64,000 nt of DNA. Source: Pavona decussata (lineage: Eukaryota). The stretch's first letter is position 1, and each line of letters begins with the position of its first letter. The DNA is taken from assembly GCA_977016875.1 (NCBI GenBank), contig CDRNST010000191.1, positions 434,001 through 498,000 of the forward strand, in the 5' to 3' direction. The notes below the pieces were generated by a model. It was not told the origin of the DNA. It was given only the letters and a program-made list of their open reading frames with translations, and searched no databases. Of this stretch, positions 35,101 through 54,407 are shown piece by piece. Both the position numbers and the translations under genes were made by a program.

Positions 35101-38100
35101 TAACCTTTCATTTTCGATGGTATAACTGACGCTCTCCTAAACGTAGGGGCCGACATTATGAAGCTTCCAGCAGTCCTGTACTTCAAGCAGGGAAACAAGA
35201 AGCATGGAATCTCTGGCAAGAAACTGAAACCCAAGAGCAAACACGCGTCCAAAGCTAAAGTTGTTGAGAAGCGAGACGAGGGAGATAGACGAGACGTGGT
35301 CTTCCTCAACAAGCCATACGATTATGCTCCTACAAAGCAGTCCCCTACCACCACTTACAACTTGTTTGACTACAAAAGCAATTACAGAAACTGGCTTTTC
35401 CTGTATCCCGACGAGCACCCCGTCCATATGCGATATGTTGACCAGGGGAAAAAGGCCGATACTAATCAGCAAACAGCTGGACAGCAGCAGGCTGGTGCTA
35501 CTCAGGATGCTGCTGGAGCTCCAGTGGCTGCCGCTGGTGCTGCTGCACCCATGGTAGCTCCTGCTGCCGCTGCTGCAGCTCAGCCAGCTGCACCCGTTGC
35601 AACAGCCCCTGTAGCTCCTGCTGTGGCTCAGCCAGCTGCACCCGCAGCAGCTGCTCCAGCTACTGCCGCTGCTCCAGTAGTACCTCAAGTAGAACAGGCT
35701 GCAGCAGCACCAGTCGCAGCTCAACAACCCGTGGCAGCTGCTGAGCAGCCATTGGCTGGTGCCCAAGCAGCATTCACAAATCAGGCACCGGTAGCCACCC
35801 CTGTTGCTGAAAACCAGACCATCGAGCTAATCAATCAAACAGTTTCCTTGGCAACCAACAAGACCCAGCAACCAGTTGTCGGAGTTGGCGCGGTCGGCTT
35901 TGAACCAACTGTTGCCAATGTGACTCAGACAAGTCAGGCGGTTACGGACGGAGCTACTGTGCAGGGATTTGAGGCAGGAAACAGTAACTCTAACAAGACT
36001 GTCGCTGCAGGTAATGATCGATCTAACATTCGTTTTCTGTTTATTTCGCTGTCTCAAACAATTAGGTCTTACCTTAGTTCTACGCCATTACAGATCATTT
36101 GATTCATCATTACATTTCCTCGACATCATTTGTTTAAGCACCTTTATCAGGAACTAAAAGACAGGATAATTGAGTCTATTTTCTTGAGAAAACTTCGACA
36201 GGCCTTTCAACTGATTGCAGTATGATACCTTTTAAAAATCATTAAGAATGGAAGCAATCGAGAATGAATCGTAGCAAAGAAAAACCCAATCGCATAATTT
36301 TCATGGTGAAGTTAATGACTTGTAAGGATATTTGTCCAGAAACGTGTCTTAAACACTCAACAAAAGGGAGTCTTCATGAAGTAAATCTGAATAAAATATG
36401 TGAAATTCCAAAGGTTTTACTTCAAGAACAACTGGTAACTTAATTTTCTAAAAAAACCTCTGAAGTCTTATTTAGGAAAGGGGTTGGGGGTGTGGGGTTA
36501 TCGGCAACGGAAGGAATAAAAGGTCGGCTATTGAAACAATCTTGTTTTATATGAATAAAGCGAATCCACAAATGCTCATGTTTTTCTTACACAAGGTAAC
36601 ATCACATCACAAAATCAATCTCAATCACTGGACGAAACACAAACATTCTTCATCCATCAGCCAAACTCATCCAAACCACTTGCACAATTGCAATCCGAAG
36701 CGCAGACACAATCACAAGCAACACAACTGCAATCACTTGATGCATCAATGCTGCATCACGAGGAAGCATCCATGGTAGAATCATTGAACACATCACCTCC
36801 CCGTCCTCCTCCGCTACCATCTTCACTACACGCGTCATCAGAGGAGGTAACGTCTCAAAATACACTTCATGTTGATAACACGGATGCGTCCAGTGAAATG
36901 CACGGGAATCTTAACCCTAATGCTGCGAGTGTGACTTTGTCTGGCCCAGGTACCGTGGATCTCACAACAACTGGCCAGAGCTTTACTCAGGATGTCATGG
37001 TTGATTCTGATGGTGCTGCCCAGACACCCTGGACATGCTGTAAAAATGTGAAGCCACCCAAGGATTGCAAACCCTGTCCCAAGCTTCCCAAGGCCCCGCC
37101 AAGTGAGTATAACACAACTAAAAATTCTCCCTTTTACCCTTTACTACGATGTCGAAAATGTGGCTTTAAATGCCACTGTTGTTCTTTCAAGACTCATTCA
37201 TTGCTTTTCCTCTTGTGTTTTTTAGTGCCTTATGTGTTCAACCTCTACTGTGATGACGTGTACAAGGACTGTGCTTATGGATACTCCAACTGCAATGACA
37301 CCTGGTGGCAGATTAACTGTCCCAAAACATGTGACCTGTGCAAAGGTAATGACTATTTCTTCCTGCTTGTGTGCGCCATAAAACCTATGTAAAATCTTTC
37401 ACCCTGAATCCAATTTTCACTTTACCAACAGTCTGTCTAGTTTAGAGGTACGAGGTCAAAATACACACAACATATTAACTGGCAGTATGACTCTATGAGG
37501 GATACTTAGTCACTACTTAATTTCACTTGACAGGGAGACTGTTATAAACTTTGAATTTCTTCGAATAAAGGCCGATTTTTGCTGTAGAGAAACAACGCAA
37601 TAGCATCCACCCAGTTTCTTGGCGGCTGTTTCAGCCGTTCAGTAAATCGATTGGTTTGTATAGCGGGACTCCAGTCCTAGTGCGACAACAAAGCGAACTG
37701 ATATGACGCTAAAAAGGTGCGAGGAGGAAGTACAGTCTTTGCTTTGGTATTCACAGATGCATTTTAAGACCATAATGTGATTCGAAGGGCTACGTTCGTT
37801 TCGGACCTGTCTCCATTACCAAAAGGCTAGGGGTCTTAACGTAACGTGTACCGTAAGGTCGACTTGTCGGCGATCCGTGTGCAAGATTCGTAGACCACAA
37901 CTTCGAATACCGCCAAGAGCCAAGGGAAATTATAATAACAATTTGTCAACTGCTAGTAACAAAGTAGAATTGCTCGATAGAACTTCGTCAACTGTGACTA
38001 CAAAGCAAAAATAAGTTTAAAAAAAATAATTAAAGCAGAACAAAACAGGTCAAGACAAAAGGAAGTGATACTACAATGGAACGCCAACGATACAAAAACA

Positions 38101-53100: not shown

Positions 53101-54407
53101 GCCTTTCAGTCAACTGTCAATGTTTATCCTTTCGTTTTTTCTCAAGGACATGAACTCCCTGTAGCCCTTCCTTTGTCGGAACTACCCGGACCCAACGCGG
53201 CACCAAAAGCAACCAAACCTAAGGATCTGGAACCTGCATCTAAGCTCCCCAAACCAGGAAAACTGCATACAAAGCCACATCTGAAAGCTGCATCACATGA
53301 ACAGCAGCAACCTCTAAAAGTGCATGCGCAAGAGCAGGAACATGACCAAAAGGCATCCCAAGAGGCAAGAGTTCACCTACACAGAAAAGTCAGCAAAGAA
53401 GTAGCCAACAAAGTATTAACAAAGCTTGAAAGCACCTTGCCTGTGCACGTGGTAACTGAAAAGCAAAAACGTAAGTAGAATTAATTCAAGCAATGTTAGA
53501 AAGGATACGTCGAGAGAATGCTTCCTTCCAAGGAACTATAGTCTTATTTTGTGGAGTCGAGGTACACGCCTAGTTGTTGGTGGTTGGAATTCTAAGAATG
53601 TTTGGAAAATTGCTGAAGTGATTCCATTGTAAGACCTGGCCTTTTGTCGCCAGTCACCTTTCAAAGTAAAGTGTATTACTAACCGTGTTATTCACCAATT
53701 CCGCCTGGCCTTGAATGCTGTTGGTCGACCTCGAAAGAAACTTATCAATTGGACCTTTTACAGAGTGTCGTTAAAACCAAAACCAAAATAATTGCTTCCG
53801 CCAATCACAACAGACGCCAACAACGCAATGAGCTAATCAAAATTAGTAGCAAATACACGTGAATCCGTGCCAAAGCGGGAAAACGAGCGGAACACAAGTG
53901 ACAGTTTGTTTTGGTTTTGTTTCTCAATGATTAACAAAGTGGTTTGAGTTTTTTCAACCAATCACAAAGCGTCGCGGAGCAAAACCAAAGAAAATGAGCA
54001 ATTACTTTCGACACCCAATTGAAAATCGCTCTAAGGGGATAGAGGGGGCTTTTTCTTTAGTATTTTTTAGATACTACGGATAGATGCTCATTAGAAAGAG
54101 GGGGGAAGAGGGAAGGGAGTACAATAATTAAACTAATTAATCATCTTATAATTCATCTTATACAGACGAGGAACAAGTTACCAATGGGCATAAGATTAAA
54201 CTGACTGACGAGGGCAAGCCTCAGCGGGTGTTTGGAAAAGTGGACCCCAATAATGTAGCCATCACAATGCAGGGGCCTGGGTCGGTAGCGGTGTCATCAC
54301 ACCTGACGGACGGAAGCCAAACTGTCATTTTCGATCCCAGGCCTGTAGATCCGTGCCCTGACAAAAACTGTCCCCACCAAAGTGGCAGAAAGAGACACAA
54401 GAACTGA
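50141..54407 (+). CDS. Gene E: secreted His/Lys/Gln-rich protein with two GPG motifs (~318 aa)
   Basis: Exons 50141-50219 (MRRLFSLLICVAIVVQGRPRHHKHKK, signal peptide), 52490-52801, 53147-53470 and 54166-54407 (ends CPDKNCPHQSGRKRHKN*). Phase-1 GT-AG introns, in frame. 3'UTR intron 54433-54934; AATAAA 55160. Confidence 0.8.
53757..54033. repeat. Interspersed repeat with internal inverted motifs
   Basis: gagtgtcg / cgacaccc and aaaaccaaaac / gttttggtttt inverted blocks; repeated ccaatcacaa. Confidence 0.45.

Follow-up and report, generated by a model that had tools for sequence, protein, structure and literature searches.

A GPG-turn motif shared by two neighbouring genes of Pavona decussata is very probably the core of a previously unnamed, predicted extracellular module

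A stretch of 64,000 nucleotides from Pavona decussata (contig CDRNST010000191.1, forward-strand positions 434,001 to 498,000), hereafter the window, contains two genes, designated C and E, that share a peptide motif of 20 residues with a Gly-Pro-Gly (GPG) turn, once in C and twice in E. The analysis presented here indicates that this motif is very probably the central hairpin of a larger predicted extracellular module of about 57 residues and five strands, the copies of which are homologous and constrained by selection. The module represents a previously unnamed family that has been seen so far only in stony-coral-type sequences. A first-pass annotation of the window had described the 20 residues as a free-standing motif occurring in two otherwise unrelated genes. 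Both parts of this description require revision, as the motif appears to be the core of a homologous module, and it is by way of this duplicated exon module, common to both, that C and E are related, not by convergence.

The three peptides translate exactly at positions 36904-36963 (gene C), 52630-52689 (E copy 1) and 54234-54293 (E copy 2) of the window, all on the forward strand, and these translations are identical to those of the first-pass annotation. A regular-expression search in six frames finds the motif pattern, including looser versions of its core, at only these three places in the window, where GPG itself occurs 15 times in six frames and fits the motif pattern in just three instances. 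The window, which contains a run of 130 N at 20879, lies on contig C191 of an assembly of 602 Mb, and profile searches of the whole assembly return the same three places only. A fourth genomic match (C143, E=0.93) was read, found to lack a G-x-G turn and discarded as a chance hit. Additional hits of a back-translated DNA pattern were likewise attributed to chance, two of them containing in-frame stops and one lying within an interspersed repeat. A translated repeat ("...RVFLRV..F..L.K.Q...") is common to an intron of the intervening gene D (44631-44930, forward strand) and to L004:1400-1600 (contig C35 of genome G000); it is probably an interspersed repeat frequent in the genome, and it is the source of one false match of the DNA pattern.

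Evidence for homology of the copies comes from orthologous open reading frame (ORF) fragments in public coral assemblies, comprising 14 of the C type, about 27 of E copy 1 and about 15 of E copy 2. Profile-profile comparison with hhalign aligns C with E copy 1 over 41 columns and with E copy 2 over 57 columns, with P=1.1e-5 in both cases, and the two E copies with each other over 35 columns (P=7e-10); none of 150 column shuffles reaches the observed scores. A hidden Markov model (HMM) built exclusively from E sequences and run on the window's complete set of 2,125 open frames retrieves the C exon with E=9e-10 and 35.7 bits, the next match having E=1.6. Searched against the same frames, a C-only HMM finds exon 4 of gene E at 4.2e-5 and exon 2 at 1.3e-3, with noise starting at 1.6. 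The match between C-type and E-type profiles is reciprocal and spans at least 40 columns. Among 2,000 composition-preserving shuffles for each target exon, none reaches the real HMM score, the real values and the shuffle maxima being 37.0 versus 10.3, 20.8 versus 7.9 and 16.8 versus 13.4 bits. Furthermore, MAFFT, hhalign and HMMER place the copies in an identical alignment register. In a tree of the copies, which was used for the split between C and E only, this split receives support of 98/98 and the C copy sits on a long branch from the E copies, amounting to 2.0 changes per column; copy 1 and copy 2 are not separated from each other.

A likeness of low-complexity secreted proteins arising by chance or from composition, without common ancestry, might be suspected on the grounds that the module is short and that a combined profile gathers weak matches, summed over several stretches, on bacterial proteins of five unrelated beta-repeat families (Calx-beta, PKD, Cna_B, SdrD_B and DUF2807), which were set aside as non-specific; it is nonetheless highly improbable and effectively already refuted by reciprocal and significant searches with family-exclusive profiles whose noise lies nine orders of magnitude lower, by the shuffles (0 of 2,000 and 0 of 150 reaching the real scores), by the single register recovered with three programs, and by an exon phase that is equal in all copies within a region free of compositional bias. 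Judged from these alignments, the three module copies are homologous. The idea that the GPG motif is a real conserved element common to C and E is therefore upheld by the profiles and by the orthologues, in which the motif is conserved, and shuffled sequence does not reproduce its scores.

The conserved block extends well to either side of the motif. The approximately 13 residues that precede the first glycine form an alternating hydrophobic strand common to all copies, and past the turn and the next strand there follows a further strand of the type Q/T-x-V-x-V/F-D. For structure prediction the domains were folded separately, with the exons handled singly. Using an alignment without any C sequences, AlphaFold2 predicts for the block of about 57 residues in E copy 2 a model with five strands, located at residues 8-14, 20-25, 29-35, 38-44 and 50-56, with a predicted local distance difference test (pLDDT) score of 75. 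Placed on this model, the motif begins in the last part of strand 2, includes strand 3 and passes by way of a two-residue G-P turn into strand 4. The initial guess of a beta-strand/turn/beta-strand element thus fits the predicted model, with G-P serving as the turn. Using C-only sequences, the C block is predicted to form four strands in the same order as in E copy 2, at low confidence (pLDDT 55).

Conservation is strongest in the hairpin and in the polar residues flanking it. The proline of the turn is variable, with GTG found at the turn in five orthologues, four of C and one of copy 1, and GPQ in one copy-2 sequence. Two contigs from one ENA sample (ERZ25067868) also differ at this position in E copy 2, with GSG in L010:11560-11850 and GPG in L014:2956-3348; the difference reflects either haplotypes or a closely related genome, and the pair shows that the turn proline is dispensable. 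The consensus derived in the first-pass annotation describes the three window copies correctly, and its fixed GPG proline is the part that does not stand, given GTG, GSG and GPQ in orthologues.

Substitution patterns point to purifying selection on all module copies. The ratio of nonsynonymous to synonymous substitution rates (dN/dS) in comparison with the orthologous locus L010 is 0.17 for E copy 1 and 0.22 for E copy 2, and 0.37 for the linker between them. For the C module, the ratio is 0.14 and 0.26 in comparisons with L011 and L012, respectively; against the same two loci it ranges from 0.44 to 0.75 in the low-complexity half of the exon carrying the module and from 0.06 to 0.08 in an exon of C resembling the ShKT domain. 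A separate comparison of E copy 1 (52564-52800) with the closest species, L009, gives a dN/dS of 1.59 from very few changes (dS 0.05), which is probably noise in view of the value of 0.17 against the more distant L010.

A profile search of 1.84 billion representative proteins produced 30 matches at E<1e-10, and all of those that were read (that is, all but P0051, P0052 and P0056) are of the C, E copy-1 or E copy-2 type. Relatives were found only among stony-coral-type sequences, with Montipora as the sole named source; some 15-25 further coral sequence sets contain each of the three types of copy. Pfam returned nothing above cut-off for the exons, for the full-length Montipora protein or for 27 module sequences. 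Searches of the PDB gave no meaningful match either by sequence (best E=0.095) or by fold (Foldseek best E=1.9; VIA-align best Z=2.5). In the ESM Atlas there was no usable feature-based match, and comparison by shape led to assorted bacterial beta domains at template modelling (TM) scores of about 0.5. A literature search on the motif strings and the Montipora accessions yielded nothing relevant.

In a model based on splice signals and sequence conservation, with all junctions in phase 1, gene E encodes a secreted protein of about 330 residues from four exons on the forward strand, with one module at each end. Exon 1 (50141-50219) provides the start codon, a signal peptide and a basic stretch and ends in a phase 1 donor; its translation and donor were read, and it stands out as an 89-nucleotide island with 83% identity to L010 amid intron and intergenic DNA that cannot be aligned. 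Exon 2 (52490-52801, phase 1-1, splice sites read) carries module copy 1 at approximately 52570-52758 and has more than 20 orthologue ORFs. Exon 3 (53147-53470, phase 1-1, supported by its splice sites) encodes a basic linker rich in K, P, H and Q, in which a short stretch close to the end is conserved. The last exon, exon 4 (54166-54407, acceptor and stop read), contains module copy 2 (54168-54335), a basic tail and the stop codon. The order along the protein is thus signal peptide, module, basic flexible linker of about 110-140 residues, module, C-x4-C pair and basic tail.

The same architecture is found in P0041, a full-length protein of 357 residues that was returned by the search of representatives with two matched stretches and is collinear with the four E exons. 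Exon 1 matches its residues 9-29, exon 2 residues 29-134, exon 3 residues 140-271 with a gap of 31 residues, and exon 4 residues 277-353 with 65% identity. The description of E as having one copy near each end is borne out by this Montipora orthologue. The 90% cluster of P0041 holds XP_068696708 and XP_068757249, both annotated as "uncharacterized protein", from Montipora foliosa and M. capricornis. In addition, a 1,546-nucleotide Logan contig contains the uninterrupted reading frame of 357 codons, showing that the E gene is spliced and expressed in Montipora. Mature E begins and ends in short, strongly basic stretches rich in R, H and K (50192-50218 and 54381-54404), the C-terminal one often preceded by glycine, and both are also present in the Montipora protein; processing by convertases or binding to acidic glycans is conceivable for these ends.

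The module copy in gene C (36838-37008, forward strand), delimited by hhalign and the E-only HMM, lies in an exon at 36596-37103 on the same strand, both ends of which are in phase 1. This exon encodes about 80 residues of Q/S-rich low-complexity sequence, the module and a cysteine cluster. Its acceptor and its GTGAGT donor were read, and orthologue ORFs diverge just past the donor.

Cysteines beside the copies had been reported as a general feature, each copy lying near a small cluster. This applies, with conservation, to the C copy and to E copy 2, but not, in the majority of species, to E copy 1. The cluster directly after the C module, CC-x8-C-x2-C in the window (37036-37077, forward strand), follows the pattern CC-x8/9-C-x2-C in 14 orthologues with all four cysteines invariant, and the C-x4-C pair in exon 4 after E copy 2 (54354-54371, forward strand) is kept throughout. 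The three window cysteines around E copy 1 ("CxC...C") are missing in most orthologues and are specific to the lineage of the window. In many other species the fourth strand of copy 1 is followed by a C-x2-4-C pair that is absent from the window and that was lost in the lineage of the window and in Montipora-like lineages. The copy-1 orthologues with this pair, which mirrors the C-x4-C after copy 2, are P0022, P0025-P0027, P0030, P0032-P0035 and P0055.

Several points weigh against the interpretation of the motif as the hairpin of a homologous and constrained module. The homology between C and E is founded on short profiles, the hhalign probability for this pair is just 82%, and the closest column shuffle for C versus E copy 2 scores 30.1 compared with the observed 33.0. 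The structure model of the C domain is of low confidence, as its pLDDT of 55 indicates. The 1.84-billion-protein search yielded no annotated full-length protein with the C exon, and the coding status of this exon is deduced from its conservation, splice sites and dN/dS. Finally, most relatives are unnamed ORFs from ENA or Logan, so that the restriction to corals is based on two named Montipora entries and on similarity.

The arrangement of the genes is conserved as well. The C exon and the E exons occur on one contig and on the same strand in ERZ26168041, 15.6 kb apart, and in ERZ25067868, 19.6 kb apart, their spacing in the window being approximately 16-17.5 kb. The order of D and E is kept in L009, and in L015, the most divergent locus, a D-like gene precedes E and an ORF of the FN2 type follows it, as in the window. 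This FN2-domain ORF (L015:18839-19120) lies about 7 kb downstream of E and has a parallel in the VWC-FN2-mucin gene at the window's right end, so that more genes than C, D and E may belong to the conserved cluster. An ORF of 1,276 residues with a DNA_pol_B_2 match (L010:467-4297), about 6 kb upstream of the E orthologue in L010, has no counterpart in the window and is probably a large mobile element.

The three copies arose by duplication or shuffling of an exon, at a time before the sampled corals diverged and inside a conserved cluster of genes for secreted proteins, and purifying selection has since kept them. As to what the module does, it could serve as a binding unit, and if it is taken as such, E would be a two-headed (bivalent) adaptor, possibly in the secreted matrix or mucus of corals.

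How such a unit might act can be envisaged in more than one way. The modules could all bind one and the same third partner instead of each other, be it a glycan, a microbial surface or a component of the matrix or mineral, and a recognition unit would then be all that C and E have in common. Small all-beta modules that were spread among secreted proteins by phase-1 exon shuffling are commonly ligand-binding units, and the idea fits with a neighbourhood that holds further secreted mosaic genes of ShKT, mucin-like and FN2 types and with the concentration of conservation in the hairpin and its flanking polar residues. However, the PDB searches by sequence and fold and those of the ESM Atlas revealed no likeness to known binding folds, and a common ligand is put forward here as a tentative possibility that falls clearly short of an even chance.

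The first-pass annotation had suggested that the element may drive homo- or hetero-polymerisation and link C and E physically, E resembling a cross-linker. In a model of this kind, a module would pair through its edge strands with a second copy of itself or with its counterpart in the other protein, possibly locked by the nearby cysteines, with E stapling C into a network. The architecture of E, with a module at each end of a basic linker of about 110-140 residues, lends itself to such a role, and at least three genomes have C and E as same-strand neighbours. The C copy and E copy 2 each have conserved cysteine pairs behind them, as does E copy 1 in many species. Yet the conserved gene order can also be explained by a tandem origin. 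Moreover, the copy-1 cysteines are missing in Montipora-like lineages and those of the window are lineage-specific, and the long branch of the C copy (2.0 changes per column) fits a separate function equally well as heterotypic pairing. Cross-linking of this kind is considered unlikely. Slightly less probable still is the specific version in which the E modules dock on the single module of the mucin-like C by beta-sheet pairing and are fixed there by the adjacent cysteine pairs. If this were true, stony corals would possess a lineage-specific mechanism for turning surface mucus or extracellular matrix into a gel, with a conserved gene pair encoding it.

Apart from the module exon, gene C comprises several segments that together suggest a large mosaic protein of ShKT-type and mucin-like parts, which is presumably secreted. 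An A/P/Q-rich block occupies the open frame 35104-36099. The ShKT-type exon mentioned above (37226-37346, forward strand, splice sites read) follows the module exon and is entered in phase 1; it scores below the cut-off of the Pfam ShK model (E=0.029, 15.4 bits), and the exon is conserved in L011 and L012. Further open frames encode a cysteine-free domain shared with gene D (38161-38616), T/S-rich repeats (39204-39818) and another ShKT-type exon (39953-40183). The beginning of gene C has a single candidate, a weak signal-like ORF at 32142.

Regarding gene D, a likely first exon at 42269-42342 (forward strand) has a start codon, a hydrophobic signal-like stretch and a phase-1 donor, and lies about 1.6 kb upstream of the exon for the cysteine-free domain of D. 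This domain of about 100 residues, found in the window at 38161-38616 in C and at 43890-44516 in D, is conserved with 61-90% identity in two other species, at L009:456-1064 and L015:1773-2129, and always lies upstream of E.

The mucus and extracellular matrix of corals are important in defence and feeding, for the microbiome and in building the skeleton, and most of their proteins are lineage-specific and unnamed. What had been a likeness of 20 residues is now a defined family with boundaries, a signature, an exon structure, a gene model for E and a conserved gene order. As such it can enter domain databases and be used to query expression atlases of corals as well as proteomes of mucus or skeleton. 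With its two-headed architecture and a mucin-like partner beside it, E additionally offers a concrete hypothesis that is cheap to pursue.

Comparison with known systems helps to place the module. The tandem GPGXX repeats of silk- and elastin-like proteins do not occur here, each copy having a single GPG. The rungs of DUF2807/GIN (PF10988) beta-helices resemble the motif in their succession of hydrophobic strand, G-[SP]-G turn and hydrophobic strand, and the combined profile weakly matched a bacterial DUF2807 protein (P0059) with E=2e-6 summed over five rungs. In such bacterial proteins a beta-helix is built up from many rungs in tandem, whereas the coral sequences have one G-x-G turn per module, forming a single hairpin within a predicted five-strand model that shows no repeated rung. 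None of the three window exons matches PF10988 at E<=1 and only one of 27 module sequences gives a match, at E=0.031 and far below cut-off; a taxonomic or architectural link between DUF2807 and the coral module is likewise lacking.

Among cnidarian proteins, the minicollagens and NOWA are secreted proteins of the nematocyst with a structural segment bordered by short cysteine clusters, which bring about polymerisation through disulfides. The minicollagen-type domain has the spacing C-x3-C-x3-C-x3-C-x3-CC, a six-cysteine C-x3-C repeat that differs from the CC-x8/9-C-x2-C and C-x4-C found here, where no collagen or polyproline segment adjoins. Trefoil-factor peptides are small multivalent mucus proteins that cross-link mucins. 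The fold of the E module is unrelated to theirs and a binding role of E is only hypothetical; the resemblance lies in E being a small secreted protein with two module copies whose gene adjoins a mucin-like one.

Many orphan extracellular modules of animals owe their spread to phase-1 exon shuffling, and a family of this kind is not in itself surprising. The mobile ShKT modules (PF01549) offer a parallel. The strands of the present module contain no cysteine, and the module shares no sequence or fold match with ShKT and was found in two gene families only; neither a six-cysteine ShKT framework nor a Pfam match is present in the motif region, and the only ShK signal comes from the next exon of gene C. 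Like the ShKT modules, however, the coral module is small, occupies its own phase-1 exon and is reused in secreted mosaic proteins, and in gene C it directly adjoins ShKT exons.

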